NCBI GenBank assembly: GCA_033442325.1
Contig: JAWQFM010000033.1
Coordinates: 62,001 to 126,000, forward strand
Direction of reading: 5' to 3'
From: Salpingoeca rosetta
Lineage: Eukaryota; Protista; Choanoflagellata
DNA length: 64,000 nt
The position numbers and the translations under genes are program-made. Each line of letters begins with the position of its first letter. Positions within the stretch are counted from its first letter, which is position 1. The notes beneath the pieces are model-generated. The model did not search any database. It saw nothing but the letters and a program-made list of their open reading frames with translations, and was not told where the DNA came from. Positions 1 through 43,451 of this stretch are shown here, one piece after another.

Positions 1-2907
1 CTTGAGACAGCAAAGGTGTTTATGTGCGGCGATTACGGCATTGGCAAAACGACCATGATCGAGTCGCTGGCTGGAAGCTATTTTCGCCAATTGCTGTTTG
101 CGGCCTGGCAACCACGTGACGATCCAGACCGTCCAAATGAGCGTACACCCGGAATCCGGGTTTGTGAAATGAAACTCCAAGACACCACAAGCCACACCAG
201 CGATGAAGTCGCTTCCTTGCGTGTCTACGACTTTGGAGGACAGTGGGCCTATCACGTCATTCACACCCTGATGATGTCTGATCGATTTGCCGCCTTTGTC
301 GTTTGCGTCGACCTCTCCCAGCCTGAACAGCACGTGAAGGAACACGTCAACTACTGGCTTCGTTTCATCTGCACAAGACTCCAGCAAGGTGTAGCAGCTG
401 CCACCGCAACCGCAGATGGAGACGGGATAGAAAACACGAAGCCGCGTGTTCTCATCGTTGGAACGAAGAGGGACCTTGCCTTCCAGAAGACCCTTGTGGA
501 TGAACGTGGACAGCCCCCTTGGGGTGCAGCAATGGTCGCCCATCTGAAGAGAACGTTCGGCGGCATCGTTGACATCCAAGATCCCCTCATCTCACTCAAC
601 TGTTATCAAAGTGGTGAGGCCGGATTTATTGAGCTCCGGGCACAACTTTTTCAACACTGGTGTCAGCTGAAGGAACGCAAGCTTGTCGTCCCCAGAGTCG
701 TGGATCTGCTTGCCACAACCCTCCAATCAGCCCGGAAAGAGAAACCAGCGTGGACCATTGATGCCCTCTTTCAGTTTACCCTAACACATGCCCCTGGACT
801 CGGTTTGACCTCCTTTGGCATGCCAACGTTTTATTCTGCGTTGAGGTACTCTTGAAACGCCTTGCTCATTTGTCATCCATGTTGTGCAAACAGTTCACTG
901 ACTTCAGTGCAAATGCTAGAATTCTGACACATCCGCTGCCCCTGTTACCTATGCTTCTCACACATGTTCGCAGGTACCTCCACGCACGCGGCGATTTGCT
1001 GTGGTACTCGAACAACCCCTCCTTGCAGGATTCTGTCTTCGTCGACCCCAACTGGCTGCTTCATGACGTGCTGGGGAGAGCACTGACGCCGGATGGCGTG
1101 CAGCAAGGCTCCATCACCACGAAAGGTGTCGTAACATTCACGGACCTGGAAACCGCATTTGATGGCGTCGCCAGCGCAGACCTCGTCATCAACGTGCTGC
1201 AGCACACGCTCCTCTGCTTCGAGCTGTCGCCTTCTGACGATGGGCAACGGCGATTCATGCTGCCGAGCCGCGTTGAGGAGGAGGTCGATCTCGCAACCGC
1301 CTGGTCACGAAGCAAGTGGCCGCTCTACGCCGGACGACGGCTGGTGGTCGAGAACCACGCGCTTGCGCTGCCACCTGGCTTCTTTCCGCACGTGCAGACA
1401 CTGCTGCACAAATCGTTTGGGGCAACACTGAAGGTGTGGCAAGATGCCTTCTTCTGCAAGCGCGATGGCGTGCAATGCCTTGGACTTCTGCGAGATGATC
1501 GAGAAGTGGACGTGTGGGTTCGCGCATCCGCTGGTGCAGAGTGCAGCGCTTGGAGCTGCATGATGGAGGTAAGGACGAACAGATGTGCGTGAATTGACGC
1601 GCATATGTGTGCATGCGTGTCTTGCCAATGTGGTGGGTTGTAGCTGAATCTGCGTTTGTCTTCACAGCGATTTCCTTCTTCCTTTCACGTCCGTTTGCTT
1701 TCACAAACCACCACAGATCGTCTCCTTCCTGCAAGAAGATGCGAGCGGCATCGACCACGTCCAACACGTCCTCAGCGTGAATCACTTGCAGCAGCACCAC
1801 GATTACCCCGCCAGCCGCCCCATCACAGACCTGGAGGACCTCGCCTTGCATGACCTCGTCGACTTCGCAGACGACGACAATCCACCCACGCGACTCGGGG
1901 ATCTGCTCGTACATAACCCCATCCTGACAGCACGCTGGCACCAACCTGGGCACGAGTGGCACCACCCTCGTTGGCGACTTGATGACAGCTTCGACCGCTC
2001 GTTGCAGTGGACTGGACCTGGCGCTCACGGCGTGTACTCTGTATCTCTTCCGCCAGACACAGACCTGTACCGATGGATAGAGAGCCAGATGACGTCGGGC
2101 CTCACCCTGTCGCGCGTGGAGATGACCAAGTCCACCACGATGCTGCGTGCCTTTCAGACGCAAGTCCAGCGGTCAGCGACGCGTCGTGGTGACACTGAGC
2201 CGTCAAATCCCTTCAACCAAGACTTTGGAGCTAGTGACCCGGAGAAGCGCGCCATGCTTGACCGGCTCAAGACGCAGTTTGCACGAACACCCGGTGGCGT
2301 GAACCATGTCAACGTCCTCGTTGCCTGGCACGGCTGCGACGAGGCTGTCGCTGGCAGCATCAGTGCGTGCGGGGCAGCGAACTTTAGCAGCCCGGGCGAC
2401 CGTGGCTTCTTTGGGTCTGGTATCTACCTCACACCACAGGCAAGCTATGCCGCAGGCTACTCGACACGCCTGCTCACTGGAGGTTGGCGTCCACCCAACG
2501 CAGATGGTGAGCACGTGTTGTTGTTGTGCGCTTCCAGCGTTGGCCTGGCGTACCCGATCACCCGAGCCGCAGATTACCCTCATGGCTCGAATGAATGCTC
2601 CTACTACGGGAAGCCTTTTGATGAAAGCCAGGACACGCACTATGTCCAGGTGACACGCACCACCAACTTCCAGGCCACCCGCACCGCGGGCACGTTTGAC
2701 TTTGAGGAATACGTCTTCTCGCAAGAAGTGCAAGTTCTGCCGTTTGCCAAGGTGTTTGTGAAGGTGCGGAGGGATGAGTTGCGGGCGCACCTGGAATCTC
2801 CTCCAAGCATTACGATTCCCGTGGCTCCTGAGACTGCTGGCGATGATGGCGGTGATGACGACGATCAGGACGGTGTAGAGGATGGAGAGGCGGAGTCGAG
2901 TGCGTGA
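1..2907 (+). CDS. ROCO-family protein, 5' truncated: Roc GTPase + COR + C-terminal PARP-like ADP-ribosyltransferase catalytic domain. Exons <1-845, 974-1568, 1717-2907
   Basis: Roc motifs: P-loop GDYGIGKT, switch I ERTPGI, G3 YDFGGQ, G4 GTKRD. COR-like segments LRYLHARGDLLWY, VFVDPNWL, RFMLPS, LPPGFFPHVQ. PARP-like motifs WHG (2326-2334), GFFGSGIYLT (Y at 2425-2427), FEEYVF (2701-2718). Introns 846-973 and 1569-1716 are GT-AG and join the three ORFs in frame. Confidence 0.85.
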
Positions 2908-3104
2908 ATAGCGTGTATGTGTGTATGTGTGTATGTGTGTGATTGCAACACGATAGTTTGTGCCGCGTTCGTTTGCTTCACTGATGGTGCTGTTCGACAT
3001 TCTGGCTGGTATTCTCCATTGCAACCGTTTTCCTATCACAGTCACGCTGCTGTTACAACTTTGATGTTGAGTTGGCGTGTTGCAGCTCGACGTGTCGCCG
3101 CTTG

Positions 3105-3232
3105 ACGTGTTGTTTAAGTTGTTTAAGTTGTTGTTGTTGAAGTTGTTGTTAAAGTTGTTGTTGTTGTTGTTGTTTAAGTTGTTGTTGTTGTTATTGTTGT
3201 TTAAGTTGTTGTTGTTGTTATTGTTGTTGTTA
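3105..3232. repeat. Interrupted (TTG)n microsatellite
   Basis: TTG repeats interrupted by TTTAAG/TTGAAG, downstream of the ROCO gene. Confidence 0.9.
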
Positions 3233-3852
3233 CTTCTCCTTTCTCCTCTTTTCTCTTGTTTTCTCTTGCTCTCATCTCATGTCTCCACCTCCCCTCTTTG
3301 CTCCTTTTGCATGTAAGCACAACTCATTTCTGTTTGTAATGAACTGATGGTTGTCATCAACATGAAACTCAACATCCATCACGCTCATCACATTCATCAC
3401 AACACAACCACTTGAACTCCCCCATCCCTCACTCGCACCAAAGAAATCATGCAAAGCTGTATCCAAGCCACAACCAAGAACACCAGAACCCTGCATCCTT
3501 GCCCCAATTCCCCACTTCCTCATTGCACCAATGCAAGTGGCTTCAAGAACAGGTCCTCACGCAACAAGTTGTCCAGTTCGTCGTGCTGTCGTGTGCGTTG
3601 CATAGGTGCACGCAAGGATGCCCGAGCAAACCGTTGCACGCTTTCATCAACGGAAAGATGCCCTCTGATAGACCGTCATAGACTGTGTAATGTAAGTGCC
3701 ACTCGTGCGCGCCAAGCATCGAGAGTGACATGGCTGAGAACAACCAGCACAAGGCAACAGATTAACTGTGCAACACAGTGCAAATTAACAACACACAAAC
3801 AAACAATAATGTCATTGACGACACCGTCGCAACGCTCGAGAAGGTTTGTGAC

Positions 3853-6047
3853 TCAGACGTCGGTGGACGTTGGCGCATCAGCAGCGTCACCAAGCTCAGG
3901 CGGTGACGGGTGGCGCGTTGAGAGCGGGAAGCCGCTGTCCACGCGGGCGGTACCATCCAGCTTGGCAGCCATGATGGCATCAGTCACGGTTGGTTCAGTG
4001 GCGCTTGGTTTAGTCTCGCCCGGTTCCGCCAACCACACGCCCTCCGCAAACAGGGAGGAAACGCTACCGGGCTGGGTGGTGCTTGCAGACTTGGTGCTGC
4101 GAGTGTGTCCAAGAGCCACCTCAGCGTCGCGCTTGCCTTCATCGGATGTGTTGGAGAAGTAGCCAGAGGCATCCGCCATCGACAGATCGCCGTGCTGCTG
4201 CCGCTGCTGCAACGACAGCTCTTGCTGCTGCTGCTGCCGCCGCTGCTGGTCGTCATTTGGAGTTGTACCAGCTGCCTCATCTGCCTCATTGGCAGGGGCA
4301 GTGGTTGGTGTCTCCACCGCAGCGTCATCATCCTCCTCATCCTCCTCGTGCTTCTCCGTCAGTGTCGGCGGGATTGTCACCTGGCTGCTGCTGTTGACGC
4401 CTTCGCTGCCGTTGGTGTTGGTGTTGGTGTTGGTGTTGGCGTTGTCAAAGTCAACGCTCGCACGGAGCGACTCCGGGTACATGACCTTGAGCACGTTGGA
4501 GATGGACACGTGGCGGTCGCCAAGACCATCGCCGCCGTCACCAGTGGTGGTCTTCTTCTTGCGGCCGAAGCGACCGGCGGATGCAGACTTGGTCCTGCGC
4601 ATGTATCCTGGCTGCTCCTCGTCAGGCACCTCTGGCAGCGTGATCGTTTCCGTCAGCGTGCGGCGAAGGCGGCCGTTCAGCATCACCTCGTGCACACCGC
4701 GCTCAACCACAGTCTGCTCCTGTTGCTGCTGCTGCTGCTGCTGTTGTTGATACTTCTTGCGGGCCACCTCATCGGCAGGAACCTCGCGCTGCATCTCCAG
4801 CAGCTGCCGTCGCGCCTCCACCTGCTCGCGCCTTAGTGGCGGCGCTGACGGGTTGGGCTGCGGCTCAACACTACCCGGTGCATCCATGGCGAGGGTTGTG
4901 GCCGTCGTGGTGTCAGCATCGGCCTTCTCCTCATCGCCATCACTGGTGTCGTGCTGCTGCTGCTGCTGTTGCTGTTTCTCGTCATCGTTGCTTGTGGTCC
5001 TGTTTCTGTTCTCCAGGGCCGCCACCTTCTGCCGTGCTCGCGTAATCACAGACAGATCACCGGCCTCTGCGCTGCTCGCGGTGGCAGCGGTGGTGGACGT
5101 CAGTTGGGCTTTGTTGTTTGCACCAGCTGCTTGCTCGGATGTGCCGGCGTCATCACCATCTCCACCGTCACCGTCGTCACCATCAGCTTCGGCCATCTCC
5201 TCTGGCAGCTGTGTCTTGCTGTGCTTGGTCTCAATGAGCGCGGCGGTGTCGCTGCTGCTGGCGTGGTCGATGTCGGCTGCAATGAGGAAGTACGTCTGCA
5301 TCTTGCCCTTGCCCTTGATGTGCATGGCCTTGCGTGGCTCCAGCACCATGTCAGGCGCCTGCTTGGACACCAGCTCAGCCGCAGCCTCAGACATGTGGAT
5401 GCGGTTCTTCTCGCTGTTGCTTTCCATCCGTGACGCCGTGTTGACCTGGGGTAGTGGTGGTACGGAAGTGGAGGATGTGTTGGTTGACGAGAGTTGGCGT
5501 GAGGATGCGTGATGAGAGGGTGGGGACAAGGGGTGGGGAGAGAGCAGGCAAAGAAGGCGTGATACAACAGTGGCAGACACACACACACACAGACAAGCAC
5601 ACACACAAGCACAGACACAGACACACACAGGCAGACACACACTCCCACACACACACATACACACACACACACACAAATTAGCACCCAATGCGCACCGTGT
5701 CGCCGAAGAGGCAGTATCGTGGGTTCTTCGTGCCAACGACGTTTGCGACGACGGGGCCGGAGTGGAAGCCAACGCGGATGTTGACGCAGCCGAGGTCTGG
5801 CTCGTCCTCCTTGATCAGCGTGCTGTTGGCGGCCTTGACAGCGGCGACGGCGAAGCGGCCGACGCGCGCAGCGTGGTCCTTCTGCTCCTTCATCAGGTTT
5901 GTCACTGAGGGTGTGCAAAGTAGGGGGAAGAGGGCAGAGAGAAGTGTGGTGATGGTGAGGATGTTGGATGAGATGAAATAACTTGCGTGTCGTGACGATG
6001 AGATTCGTGAAAGCCAACACATACACACACAACACACACATAGACAT

Positions 6048-39519: not shown

Positions 39520-42500
39520 GGTCGTGGTTGTGGAAGTGCTGGTGCTGGTGCCAGAACCACCGCCAGAGAACGACGTTGACGATGAAGACGATGTGGTCGT
39601 GATTGTCGTCGTACTCAACGTCGTGGTGCTGGTGGTCGTGATGTTCTGGGAAGCTGTGGTCGTGGTGGTGGTGGTCGTCGTGGTCGTTGTCTCCGTGACC
39701 GTCTCTGGGACGATGGTGGTGGTGGCAATGTTGCGCATGTAGCTGTGGCGGTTCGGGTCCGTGTTGTCCTCCACCCCAGTGACGTCGGACAGCAGCGTGC
39801 ACGCCCACGCCCCACGCCCGGGGGCGTCAAGGATGAGCGCAAGGCACGTGGACGAGAGCTGGCACAGGTTGAAGCACGTCTGCGCGGATGTGCGAGACGA
39901 TCGCAGCACGTGCTTTGGCGCATATGTGAACACCTCGTCGCCGCCGAGCTCGGTAAACGACTCTGGCACCACAATTGGTGGTGGTGTTGTTGTCGTCGTC
40001 GTGGTTGTGGTCGTGGTCGTCGTTGTGGTTGTGGTGGTGGTGGTCGTGGTGGTGGTGGTGCTTGCGGTGGATGGCAGGCGCATGAACGAGTACTGCGAGG
40101 GCATGGTGGCCGGCACAATTCCGTCAAAGTCCGACAAGAACACGCAGTCCCACTGGTCAGAGCCAGGCTCCTGCAACACGAGGCCCATGCACGACGCATC
40201 GGAAAGACACAGGTTGAAGCAAGACGACGACTGCAAGCGAACACGCCGCCGCACGTGCTCTGGTTTGTAGGCGAATGTGTCCGTCTCGTTCAACTGCGCA
40301 AACGCACGCGCAAACCCAGCGGGAACCACAAGCGTTGCTGTTGAAGTAGTTGTTGTGCTTGTGCTTGTTGTCGTCGTGGCTGTGGTAGTCGATGATGATG
40401 ACGATAAAGGCAGTTGCGTCGTGGTGCTCGTGGATGTCGGCAGGAGCGACGTGGAGGTGATGAGTGTTGGAGACGGCATGGGTGTGCCTGTGATGAGCAC
40501 CGTCGTTGTTGTTGCTGGCTCTGGCGTTGTTGCCACGGGCGATGGTTGCGGTGTCCCTCCTGCTGTGGTGGTGCTGCTGGTCGCAGCTGCTGTGCTTGAC
40601 GGTGCTGCGGTTGTTGTGGCGTTTGGCGGGTTGTTCCGGCTGTAGCTGTACGAGGCGACGGCAGAGGCAGCAGACACGCCGAGGTTGCTCAGCAACCGAC
40701 ACCGCCACGCGTCGTTGCGAACGTACGCATACGCGCCCAGACACGCATCCACGTTCTCACAGCGCAGCAGGCACAGGTCAGGGGTGATGGCGCGCTCCAC
40801 ATCCAACAGCGCCGCCGCGTCGTATGCCGTGGAAAACTCGAAGAAGGGCCCCGTGTTGCCTGCAACGTGGCCCTCATACACCACCGTGTACTTGGCCTGC
40901 AGCTCCGGGGAGAGGGTGAAGGATGGCGGCGGGGTGGAGGTGGTGGACGACTGCGTGGTTGTCGGGCGCTTCTCAAAGGAGTACGAGTAGCGGGTGGTGA
41001 CCTGCTCCGTGCCCAGGAACCGCATCAGCGCACAGGTGATGTTGTCTGCTGCCGTGGCGCGGACATACACGCCGACACACGCGGCCTGCAGCGAGCAGAG
41101 CGCAAAGCACGTGTCTGGGTCGTCTGTCTCCACCGTGTCCACAACACCGCCCACTTCGTCAACGGCAGAAAACTCAGACACGTTGCCCTCGTTGCCGGGA
41201 ACGGCACCAACATACACCAGGTCATAGTACTCCATCACACGCGGCGAAAACTCGAGCGGCCCAAGCTCAGTCGTGCTCGTGCTGGTCGTTGTCGTTGTCA
41301 TTGTCGTGGTCGTCGTTGAAGTTGTTGTGGAAGCTGCTGGGGGCGTTCCGACGGTGATGGTGGTGGTCATGACATTGCGGGTGAGCGAGTGGCGGTTGGG
41401 GTCTGAGTTGTCCGCAAACGTGTCTTGGTCGAAGCCCGACAGCAGCACACACCGCCACGTCGCACCGCCGTCACGTGGACTAGACAACACAACGCCAAGG
41501 CACGACTGGCTCAGCGTGCACAGCTGGAAGCAGCGGCTTGAGGAGGACCGGGTGTCTTGCAACACCTCGCTCGGCGTGAACAGCAGCGTGGCATTGGAGG
41601 GCAGCTCCGTGAAGTATGTGTCATAGTCCTCGGGCACCGCGAAATCAGCCGTCGTCGAAGTGCTTGTTGAAGTTGTGGTTGTAGTTGTTGTTGTCGTAGT
41701 TGTTGTTGTCGTTGTTGTTGTTGTTGTCGTAGTTGTTGTTGTAGTGCTTGTTGAAGTTGTAGTTGTTGTAGTTGTTGTTGTTGTTGTAGTTGTTGTTGTT
41801 GTAGTTGTTGTTGTTGTTGTTGTTGTTGTGATGTCGTCTTGCGTGAGGCCCGGAGCGGAGAGGAAGAGACGAACGCGGTCGACATTGGCGCGTGTCTTCT
41901 GTCCATCAGATGCAAAGCGGACCGTGAGCCCGCTGCCAAGCAACGCCTCCCGCGTGCTCTGCTGTGACAGGTCAAGCGCCCCAACAACGGGGATGCACGT
42001 GGGCGTATCTGCCGTCAGGTCGCGAGATGCAACAATGCTGGTGGACGCAACAACAGCGCCATCAGCGGCAGCCAACACGTCCACATCAAATGTGTCCGGG
42101 AACGCGACCGAACTCTCCTCGGTCACCACCACGCCAAGCGCAACGAAGACGGTGCCGCGTGCGGAGTTGACGTACAGGCGGGCGTCCGGGGAGGAGAGGG
42201 ACGCGTTCTGGGCGAGAGAGCCCGTGTTTTCCAGCCGAAGCCACTGCGGCGGCGACAGCAAACCGTTTGCAGCGAGCGACGATGGGATGCTGGTCACGGC
42301 GGCTCTGAGTGTGGGCTGCTGCGACGAGCCGGGAAATGCGCCCAGCGTCCAGTTGCTTGGGAAATAGGGGGGCGTGGCCTGGCCGGAAGCGATGTCCGGC
42401 GAGCTAAAGTCTGCATTGCCCAGGGAGGAGATGGGAGCGGCCACGTCGCAGCGGCGGCCAACGAGCGATATGGCGTCAATGTCAAAGCCGTCACCGGTGC

Positions 42501-43451
42501 GGCCGAGCGCAGACACGCCCAGCACAAGCCCCTGCGTCAGCATGGTGGCGAGGGTGGCGCCGTCCACGTCCGCCTCCACCGTGACCAGGGAGAAGGTACC
42601 CGGCGCAGGGGCGGCGTTGATGTTGGTGTTGATGAGCGTCTGCAGGGACGAGCCAACAAGCAAGCGCACGGTGCCTGGTGCCTGGCTGCCAACGCCACCA
42701 TCGGGGAGGCCAAAGGCAAAGGAGATGGTGATGTGGTCAATGCACGCCAGCGCGCACGACGTGGTGTCTGTGAGGGCGGCACGCAGCTGGGCCGGGGACA
42801 CAATCTGTTCCACGCTGACGGTGCCGCCCATGCGCAGCACTTGGCGGTTGCTTGCAGGCATGGGCAGCGGGTCCAACGGCGCATACTGGCCACGCGCGGG
42901 CCGGGCGACAAAGGCGCTGGAGAGATCGTCCGAGGGCGTTGCCTCCCAGTTTGGGACGTCGTTGCTTGGGCCCGAGTCGCCACCAGACAGCAGCGCCGGC
43001 ATCTCAAAGTCTGCATTCAGCAACGGCAGGCTCAGCGTTGCATTCGCCTGGAACGGCACGTCCTGCGCTGCCACGCCTGAAGTAACAAGAAGAGCAAGGG
43101 TTAGGTGAGGGTGATAGCGGTGGTGGTGTTGGTGGTGGCAGTGGGGTGAGTGTAGCCACGGTAGTGTGACTAGCAGTGGGGGTGTTGGGATAACGTGCTA
43201 ACAGTGCCGTGGTGACAGTGGTGACGGTGGTGGTGGTGTCAGCGCATACTCCGAGCGAGCAACACCCTCAGTCAGACCTTGCCACAGAACGCTTACAAGT
43301 GCATGCATGCATGCGCAAGCAAGCAAGTAAAAGCAAGGGTGTAAAAGCAAGCAACCAAGAACAAGCAAGCAAAGCCTATGGTCCGCTTACCACGTGAGAG
43401 AGCGACAAAGGCCGTCGTGACGATGCACAGGAGCAGCACAGCTGCCCGCAT
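36970..43451 (-). CDS. Type I membrane mucin-like protein (~1,973 aa): signal peptide, two beta-sandwich/CBM-like domains, six PAN/apple-like repeats between poly-Thr stalks, SEA-like domain, TM, Tyr-containing cytoplasmic tail. Exons 43451-43391, 43076-38460, 38213-36970
   Basis: Signal peptide MRAAVLLLCIVTTAFVALSRG. Six C-x3-C-x5-C...C-x-(L/F) units (e.g. CFQLCTLSQSC...WRCVLLS). Long Thr runs. FAPGSVAVTV SEA-like motif. TM GAIVAGVVVGVVVVGLLLTVAVM. Two phase-1 GT-AG introns; spliced length 5,922 nt is divisible by 3. An alternative start at 43487 is possible. Confidence 0.85.

Follow-up and report, generated by a model that had tools for sequence, protein, structure and literature searches.

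An LRR-Roc-COR gene of the choanoflagellate Salpingoeca rosetta with a predicted PARP-type ADP-ribosyltransferase output domain

Roco proteins have been studied chiefly for LRRK2 and Parkinson's disease, the way in which the Roc-COR pair controls the output is debated, and COR-mediated dimerisation is known for the Roco protein of Chlorobium tepidum (CtRoco). The core of leucine-rich repeats (LRRs), Roc and COR is taken to be the ancestral state among Roco proteins (PMC11378527). A role as immune receptors has been proposed for LRR-ROCO families of brown algae, whose phase-2 exons each hold one LRR (Zambounis 2012; Teng 2024, PMC11378527), and a TPR-ROCO-TIR protein of the red alga Chondrus has been mentioned (PMC11378527). 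The present analysis concerns a related gene of Salpingoeca rosetta, encountered at the start of a 64,000-nucleotide (nt) stretch of genomic DNA, referred to as the window (positions 62,001-126,000 of contig JAWQFM010000033.1, hereafter C33, in the 55.4-Mb, 68-contig assembly GCA_033442325.1). Window positions 1-2907 make up the 3' half of a single 12-exon protein-coding gene (C33:59,522-64,907), which encodes, from the N-terminus onwards, a short helix, seven LRRs, Roc, COR and a C-terminal PARP-type ADP-ribosyltransferase (ART). The explanation that best accounts for the data as a whole, and which is considered probable, is that of an LRR-Roc-COR-ART switch of the Roco type with ADP-ribosylation as its output and a possible role in surveillance.

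Gene structure and the linkage of the COR and ART exons

The spliced product of the gene is identical to a public protein of 1,170 residues (P0001; present in NCBI, UniRef and EukProt). When mapped with splicing onto C33:55,001-65,000, P0001 matched exactly as 12 exons with GT..AG at the borders of every intron and, because this map coincides with our own reading of the splice sites, that reading and the annotated model are the same. A HMMER search of protein libraries likewise matched the last exon to P0001 residues 775-1170 at 100%. The published S. rosetta gene set had been refined with RNA-seq from eight conditions (PMC4054682).

Exons 10, 11 and 12 lie in the window, the first 75 nt of exon 10 being upstream of it. 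Reading frame 1 is open from window position 1; coding breaks off at 846 and restarts at 974, then breaks off at 1569 and restarts at 1717. The original prediction, made from the letters of the window and a list of its open reading frames, had proposed that Roc and COR run in frame, across a 1568/1717 splice, into a domain with PARP hallmarks, that LRRs might lie upstream, and that the ART occupies the place of the LRRK2 kinase. Each element was borne out: Pfam matches to Roc, COR-A and PARP were obtained on a product equal to P0001, the splice is a phase-0 GT..AG junction that matches the annotated protein, the LRRs are real and occupy exons 2-8, and the ART is indeed C-terminal to COR. The parts of the gene are as follows (window coordinates unless marked C33; negative values lie upstream of the window).

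-2478 (C33:59,522), + strand: start of exon 1, 125 nt, from the P0001 map
-2046 to -386, + strand: exons 2-8, each exactly 84 nt and phase 2, one LRR per exon
Following exon 8, + strand: exon 9, 93 nt, from the P0001 map
-75 to 845, + strand: exon 10, starting at C33:61,926, from the P0001 map and the Pfam Roc match, with an RNA-derived contig joining 845 to 974; encoded here are the last part of the LRR-Roc linker, the entire Roc and the start of COR-A, residues 294-575 being within the window
846 to 973, + strand: intron 10, GT..AG, interrupting COR-A; its junction is present in an RNA-derived contig and its position is shared with the contig L036 described below
974 to 1568, + strand: exon 11, the remainder of COR-A and most of the expected COR-B region, residues 576-774
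1569 to 1716, + strand: intron 11, GT..AG, phase 0, separating the COR exon from the ART exon
1717 to 2079, + strand: first part of exon 12, with the end of COR, a linker and a conserved N-terminal extension of the ART, residues 775-895
2080 to 2793, + strand: ART core of PARP fold, with the triad codons for His at 2329-2331 (WHG), Tyr at 2425-2427 (GIYLT) and Glu at 2707-2709 (FEEYV)
2794 to 2907, + strand: end of exon 12, with a C-terminal helix, an acidic tail and the stop codon TGA at 2905-2907

Each LRR consists of 28 residues and is of the ribonuclease-inhibitor type (Pfam LRR_6). The acidic tail is confined to this copy, the ten other aligned paralogues terminating earlier.

Support from RNA was obtained for several parts of this model. 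In the coordinates of locus L010, which begins at C33:55,001, RNA-derived contigs contain the joints 4644/4646>4952/4954, 5037>5182 and 5536>5705, corresponding to exons 1/2, 2/3 and 4/5 respectively, and a further contig (X5 loose end) shows the window joint 845>974, corresponding to exons 10/11. Mismatch-free RNA-derived pieces were also found over the Roc exon and over the ART exon to beyond the stop codon, one of which (X4 record 7) spans 2627-2910.

Four strong, albeit indirect, lines of evidence argue that the COR and ART exons belong to one gene. The first is intron 11 itself, which lies at an identical codon boundary with GT..AG borders and phase 0 in all 11 complete paralogues, despite an unalignable sequence that varies in length from 147 to 366 nt; most of these lengths are not multiples of three, and read-through of the intron would meet stop codons in eight of the 11. 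The second is the absence of a suitable start codon: the frame of the ART has an in-frame stop at 1647 and no in-frame ATG before 2089, so that a separate ART gene starting there would lack an N-terminal portion of the domain that is conserved and well folded. The third is provided by L036, a contig of 3,431 nt from an unrelated public sequencing run, in which a Roc open reading frame is followed by an interruption where intron 10 (846-973) sits in the present gene, and then by an uninterrupted COR-ART open reading frame. The ART of L036 retains the His, Tyr and Glu residues and is only 32% identical to that of this gene; because the fusion and the position of intron 10 are shared at this level of identity, both are older than the expansion of the family in S. 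rosetta. The fourth is a transcript-derived protein of Salpingoeca infusionum (P0013) in which COR-A is followed by PARP. This protein was also considered as transcript proof of the full architecture and was rejected for that purpose, Roc being undetectable in it by Pfam; it supports the linkage of COR and ART only.

The Roc-COR switch and the ART domain

The Roc domain matched Pfam model PF08477 with 41.1 bits, the cut-off being 27 (E 2.4e-10; residues 299-420), and its nucleotide-binding motifs are conserved in the family as follows.

28 to 54, + strand: G1 or P-loop GDYGIGKTT; GDYGIGK[TS]T is kept in the full-length paralogues
229 to 243, + strand: G3 or switch II DFGGQ; DFGGQ in six of seven aligned paralogue proteins, DFGGS in P0161
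463 to 474, + strand: G4 TKRD, a guanine-specificity motif of the NKxD type; TKRD or TKKD in all paralogues

The switch-I Thr (ERTPGI) is likewise conserved across paralogues. In a six-frame scan of the genome COR-A (PF16095) scored 36.8 bits at C33:62966-63265, above its cut-off of 35.3, whereas on exon pieces or the whole protein (residues 574-673) it scored 33.5-33.8 bits, below that cut-off, with an E-value of 4.6e-8 on the piece. Roc and an adjoining C-terminal COR, the two elements that define a ROCO protein, were thereby both found. The COR-B region (residues 660-900) gave no match among the local Pfam models, and PF27087 is listed for P0001 in precomputed family annotation. No kinase domain was matched in P0001, the region past COR being PARP-like, and the sole STAND-type hit in the Pfam scan of the exon pieces covered 25 residues around the P-loop (nSTAND3, E 0.098) and lay far below cut-off.

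All of the motifs on which recognition of the ART had originally been based were located in the frame of 1717-2907, at the following positions.

2041 to 2091, + strand: VSLPPDTDLYRWIESQM
2107 to 2121, + strand: LSRVE
2140 to 2154, + strand: MLRAF
2326 to 2334, + strand: WHG
2404 to 2460, + strand: GFFGSGIYLTPQASYAAGY
2518 to 2529, + strand: LLLC
2704 to 2742, + strand: EEYVFSQEVQVLP

The ARTD fold expected of a domain with these motifs was recovered by structure prediction. The AlphaFold model of the ART, covering residues 835-1145, had a mean predicted local distance difference test score (pLDDT) of 94.6 and a predicted template-modelling score (pTM) of 0.92, with pLDDT above 90 from residue 835 onwards in the first part of exon 12. 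In a Foldseek comparison with the PDB the best 50 listed matches were all PARP catalytic domains, headed by tankyrase 1 and 2 (E approximately 7e-11, probability 1.0, template-modelling score to target 0.70-0.76) and followed by PARP4 and PARP1.

Searches of representative proteins identified 457 relatives of the ART exon at E<=1e-3, and a family alignment of 63 domain segments was assembled, 50 of the 63 members being matched by PF00644 at E<=1e-3 (best 2.5e-13). Against PDB sequences the broad family profile matched tankyrase-1 (1.3e-4), PARP16, PARP15, PARP14, PARP10 and PARP12, and more weakly exotoxin A; a profile built from the paralogues only gave just a chance match to enoyl-CoA hydratase. 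When the family profile was aligned on tankyrase-1, WHG coincided with the catalytic His, GaGiY with the Tyr, and the Glu of fEEYV with that of YAEYVIY. Neither the residues of this His-Tyr-Glu (H-Y-E) triad nor a second Tyr (YAAGY) vary among the 10 other aligned copies, and conservation of the triad (the His, the Tyr of GIY and the Glu) lies at 90-100% in 63- and 37-member alignments of distant family members. Among paralogues the ratio of nonsynonymous to synonymous substitution rates (dN/dS) was 0.21 for the ART core, 0.18 for the preceding linker and 0.20 for the COR exon, values indicative of purifying selection on both the ART and COR exons. The domain is a PARP-type ART that bears all of the sequence hallmarks of an active enzyme, and it is predicted to be active.

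Paralogues, other Roco genes and genomic setting

DNA and protein searches of the S. rosetta genome found 12 loci at which Roc-COR is directly followed by an ART exon, a number best stated as at least 12, which supplies the paralogue count that the original prediction had proposed to obtain. A thirteenth, ART-only copy (C27:5,941-6,864) begins directly after an assembly gap, and was not counted as a distinct architecture since it adjoins that gap. Six of the paralogues are annotated (PTSG_09285, 08728, 08520, 09099, 10355 and 09169), under the name 'hypothetical protein' in NCBI and under automatically assigned names, for example 'PARP catalytic domain-containing protein', in UniRef; a full-text literature search for their PTSG locus tags found none. 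All copies examined keep intact open reading frames. Mean pairwise identities among five full-length paralogues were as follows, the LRRs being the most variable part of the proteins.

LRR region: 49%, with repeat number varying from about 5 to 10
Roc: 72%
COR: 63-68%
ART: 69%

Identity between copies was also mosaic (loci L011-L021). The identity of the C32 copy to this gene, for example, was 90% in the COR exon but fell to 55% in Roc and to 74% in the ART exon, and the median number of synonymous substitutions per site (dS) was 0.58 for the COR exon against 0.94-1.35 for the last exon; together, the mosaic and the contrast in dS suggest gene conversion or recombination between paralogues.

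Eleven of the 13 copies lie no more than 60 kb from a contig end (binomial P approximately 4e-8, with at most 14.7% of the genome within that distance of an end), and according to the genome paper repeated subtelomeric regions are common to most telomeric supercontigs (PMC4054682). The block just upstream of the present gene (C33:57,640-59,241, or L009:7640-9241; window about -4360 to -2760) is present in at least 17 copies with 76-83% identity, many of them less than 75 kb from contig ends and some adjoining Roco-ART paralogues (C2:31,319; C25:48,812; C20:1,236,832).

The six-frame scan of the 55-Mb genome returned 53 COR-A matches, made up of the 12 ART genes and about 40 other places, a Roco repertoire that is very large for a unicellular organism. 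The non-ART matches mostly scored 58-74 bits (for example C26:19551, C1:991724, C13:1707375 and C36:40774). A search for exchanged C-terminal effectors, as envisaged at the outset, was productive: at least 12 of these non-ART matches are followed on the same strand, some 1-1.3 kb downstream, by a match to TIR_2, so that the Roc-COR scaffold carries two types of NAD+-using domain in one genome. The loci, each combining COR-A with TIR_2, are listed below.

C13:1706318-1707893 (COR-A at 1,707,375, TIR at 1,706,318)
C28:853441-855029 (COR-A at 854,517, TIR at 853,441)
C8:1402317-1403951
C36:40774-42829 (COR-A at 40,774, TIR at 42,521)
C30:19274-20826
C1:990557-992239
C23:1193998-1195566
C29:887248-888822
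C4:74773-76363
C11:191949-193593
C4:2149685-2151292
C21:1122639-1124468

At C13:1,698,654-1,707,893 (L033) a Roc-COR-TIR gene lies directly upstream of, and on the same strand as, the C13 Roc-COR-ART paralogue; the gap between the TIR and ART genes contains no LRR or exon-1 match to P0001, and the locus represents either tandem genes or a single long gene.

Outside S. rosetta the nearest relatives of the ART are environmental and sequencing-run-derived contigs. The ART module occurs elsewhere at the C-terminus of LRRK2-type ARM repeats (P0005, P0004), of PH, actin and RRM domains, of VWA (a Pterocystis transcript), of an ANF-receptor domain, of protein kinases and of WD40 propellers; it was encountered next to Roc or COR only in S. 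rosetta, L036 and the S. infusionum protein. Among the proteins mentioned in a survey of PARPs is a 'PARP4-like' one from S. rosetta that has an actin domain (PMC4245714), and the actin-ART fusion is probably a protein of that kind.

Several further features of the locus were recorded. Within the LRR region (L010:5866-6686; window -1134 to -314) one contig of run X5 contains two CT..AC joints (6335>6552 and 6582>6686) and one CT..GC joint (6025>6279), none of which fits a sense exon; they may reflect an antisense spliced transcript or a chimera between LRR repeats. Directly past the stop codon (window 2908-3260) there is a (TG)n run followed by a long imperfect microsatellite of the GTT/GTTGTTTAA type, and (GT)n runs are plentiful in the introns and flanks of all paralogue copies. 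The - strand of window 3853-5772 carries a 639-residue frame with poly-Q and acidic runs, convergent with the 3' end of the gene, and related DNA occurs at C33:217-224 kb, C1:2.91 Mb and C15:1.47 Mb. On the + strand of L010:1-2090 (C33:55,001-57,090) exon-like pieces of a tyrosine-kinase catalytic domain are followed by an open reading frame with a CAP-Gly-like motif, as judged by eye from the translations.

Interpretation, alternatives and comparison with described systems

In the mechanism proposed for the gene product, the LRR solenoid would bind a ligand or partner, and might also be autoinhibitory. The nucleotide state of Roc would be relayed by COR, in the manner of LRRK2 and of bacterial Roco proteins (C. 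tepidum Roco; PMC6337361), and this relay would free or position the ART, which sits where LRRK2 has its kinase. The ART would then use NAD+ to ADP-ribosylate itself or a target, the output of the switch being ADP-ribosylation in place of phosphorylation. More speculatively, the family might survey microbes or other non-self cues by means of Roc-COR and interchangeable outputs, the ART in the present set and TIR in its sister set. A surveillance role is suggested because the genes form a multi-copy, end-proximal family, because their variable LRRs are encoded by symmetric single-repeat exons, and because there are sister genes bearing TIR. The evidence for GTP- and COR-dependent switching of the ART, and for an immune logic like that of TIR and nucleotide-binding LRR receptors (NLRs), is circumstantial and points in one direction. 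The anatomy set out in the original prediction consequently stands, with one LRR-Roc-COR-ART gene and an intact H-Y-E triad, while its functional reading continues to be something that we infer.

A number of observations weigh against this interpretation. RNA depth was zero at L010 8401-8800, so that the 1568/1717 joint is uncovered by reads; coverage was in any case very low, and most of the raw RNA reads were 95-99% alike and probably came from paralogues. The pass of this copy with PF00644 is marginal, its scores being 27.0 bits for the domain alone, 26.2 for the whole exon and 23.5 for the whole protein against a cut-off of 26.7. A homodimer prediction for two copies of Roc-COR (residues 295-790) scored 0.00, a result that gives no verdict and weighs neither way. 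The full-length AlphaFold model, made with an 11-sequence alignment, had a pLDDT of 63.7 and a pTM of 0.38, with Roc-COR mostly below 50, and because of this poor quality the packing of the domains was not read from it. GTP binding, NAD+ binding and ADP-ribosylation are predicted from motifs and fold, and an immune role is proposed by analogy. No TTAGGG runs were present at the two contig ends examined near copies, and the closeness of the copies to contig ends may be in part an artefact of assembly breaks at repeated families.

The alternative that survives best would accept an active Roco-ART and assign it to housekeeping or developmental signalling (cytoskeleton, trafficking or cell-state transitions), the copies being a by-product of duplication-prone chromosome ends; it is possible, though it is held with some reserve. 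In its favour, characterised Roco proteins act mostly in trafficking, chemotaxis and the cytoskeleton (PMC6337361), the ART module is found on actin, kinase, WD40, PH, ARM and RRM domains in other protists, the adjoining DNA block is likewise multi-copy near contig ends, and shared subtelomeric repeats are described in the genome paper (PMC4054682). By contrast, the intact frames and purifying selection of the examined copies, the concentration of variability in LRRs with shufflable exons, and the presence of TIR, a domain typical of conflict systems, after at least 12 Roco places all count against it, none of them decisively.

A more ambitious proposal than the surveillance role entertained above is that the Roco genes of S. 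rosetta (53 COR-A matches, some near chromosome ends) constitute an NLR-equivalent receptor system in which a Roco GTPase takes the place of a STAND ATPase as the switch. They would be fronted by LRRs or other repeats, the LRR exons being cassette-like and shufflable, and ART (at least 12 genes) or TIR (at least 12) would serve as interchangeable effectors. In this close relative of animals a microbial or viral ligand would elicit ADP-ribosylation or the cleavage of NAD+, either for defence or to decide the fate of the cell; in this full form the proposal is regarded as rather unlikely.

It is distinctly improbable that the fusion is real and the PARP-like domain a non-enzymatic binding or scaffold module, comparable to ZAP/PARP13 or plant RCD1/SRO and engaged only in protein-protein signalling. 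The marginal Pfam score is consistent with such a module, and the family profile also matches the inactive PARP-like domains of ZAP and SRO1 in the PDB. Inactive PARP-like domains are, however, typically without the triad residues, whereas the triad and the YAAGY Tyr are invariant in the 10 other copies, the triad is maintained at 90-100% in the 63- and 37-member alignments, and the dN/dS of the ART is 0.21.

Finally, a division into two genes, with Roc-COR ending near window 1590 and a stand-alone PARP-like gene at 1717-2907, would fit the uncovered 1568/1717 junction and the stop that the list of open reading frames places soon after 1568 in read-through, and is exceedingly improbable in view of the phase-0 intron common to 11 paralogues, the lack of an ATG before 2089 and the truncation of a conserved folded part that a later start entails, the annotated model that splices the COR and ART exons together, and the single intronless COR-ART frame of L036.

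If the preferred interpretation of an LRR-Roc-COR-ART switch is true, a Roco protein with an ART output would represent a second, independent read-out of the Roc-COR switch in a genetically manipulable organism and, for ADP-ribosylation biology, a PARP-type enzyme under the control of a built-in GTPase. The multi-copy family, with its shufflable, variable LRRs and its ART and TIR outputs, would further suggest that a sensor-switch-NAD+ enzyme logic was installed on a non-NLR scaffold before or beside the origin of animals. Were the ART to prove inactive or unregulated, the finding would amount to no more than an uncharacterised gene family with an unusual combination of domains.

The sequences are already public under automatic PARP names, and the novelty lies in recognising that they form a family and represent a Roco variant. 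In agreement with the original statement that no characterised ROCO protein with a PARP output was known, no description of one was found in the Roco review (PMC6337361), surveys of PARP evolution, the S. rosetta genome paper or full-text searches, a scope outside which the natural history of ARTs by Aravind et al. 2015 falls.

Among described systems, LRRK2, LRRK1 and Dictyostelium Roco4 share with the S. rosetta protein the order LRR-Roc-COR-catalytic output and are matched by the same Pfam models for Roc and COR-A. Their output, however, is a protein kinase in place of a PARP-fold ART, and the S. rosetta protein has neither an ARM/ANK N-terminus nor a WD40 C-terminus and carries LRR_6 repeats of 28 residues each. 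The C. tepidum Roco and human MFHAS1/MASL1 have the LRR-Roc-COR core in common with it but end past COR, where the S. rosetta protein continues for approximately 400 residues that include the ART.

The brown-algal LRR-ROCOs resemble the present family in being expanded and in having one LRR per exon, all in phase 2 and thus permitting exon shuffling, although the unit is 84 nt and 28 residues in S. rosetta against 72 nt and 23-24 residues in brown algae; they are without an output domain, and a PARP output is unreported in PMC11378527. The Chondrus TPR-ROCO-TIR protein has a TIR output, like the TIR-bearing Roco genes of S. rosetta. With tankyrase and other ARTD members the S. rosetta ART shares the fold, and the H-Y-E triad and GxGxY motif align; it is only 12-14% identical to them, lacks the PARP1-type helical regulatory, SAM, ankyrin and WGR domains, and has at its N-terminus about 60 additional conserved residues (835-895) that are specific to this protist clade.

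The logic of the proposed system resembles that of plant TIR-NLRs, SARM1 and bacterial TIR/STAND proteins, in which sensing by repeats, switching by an NTPase and an NAD+-using effector are combined in a variable, multi-copy family. In contrast to those NAD+-consuming immune receptors, the S. rosetta protein deploys a Ras-like Roc with COR rather than NACHT or NB-ARC, and a PARP-type ART rather than TIR, the likeness being one of functional analogy between switches that are not homologous.

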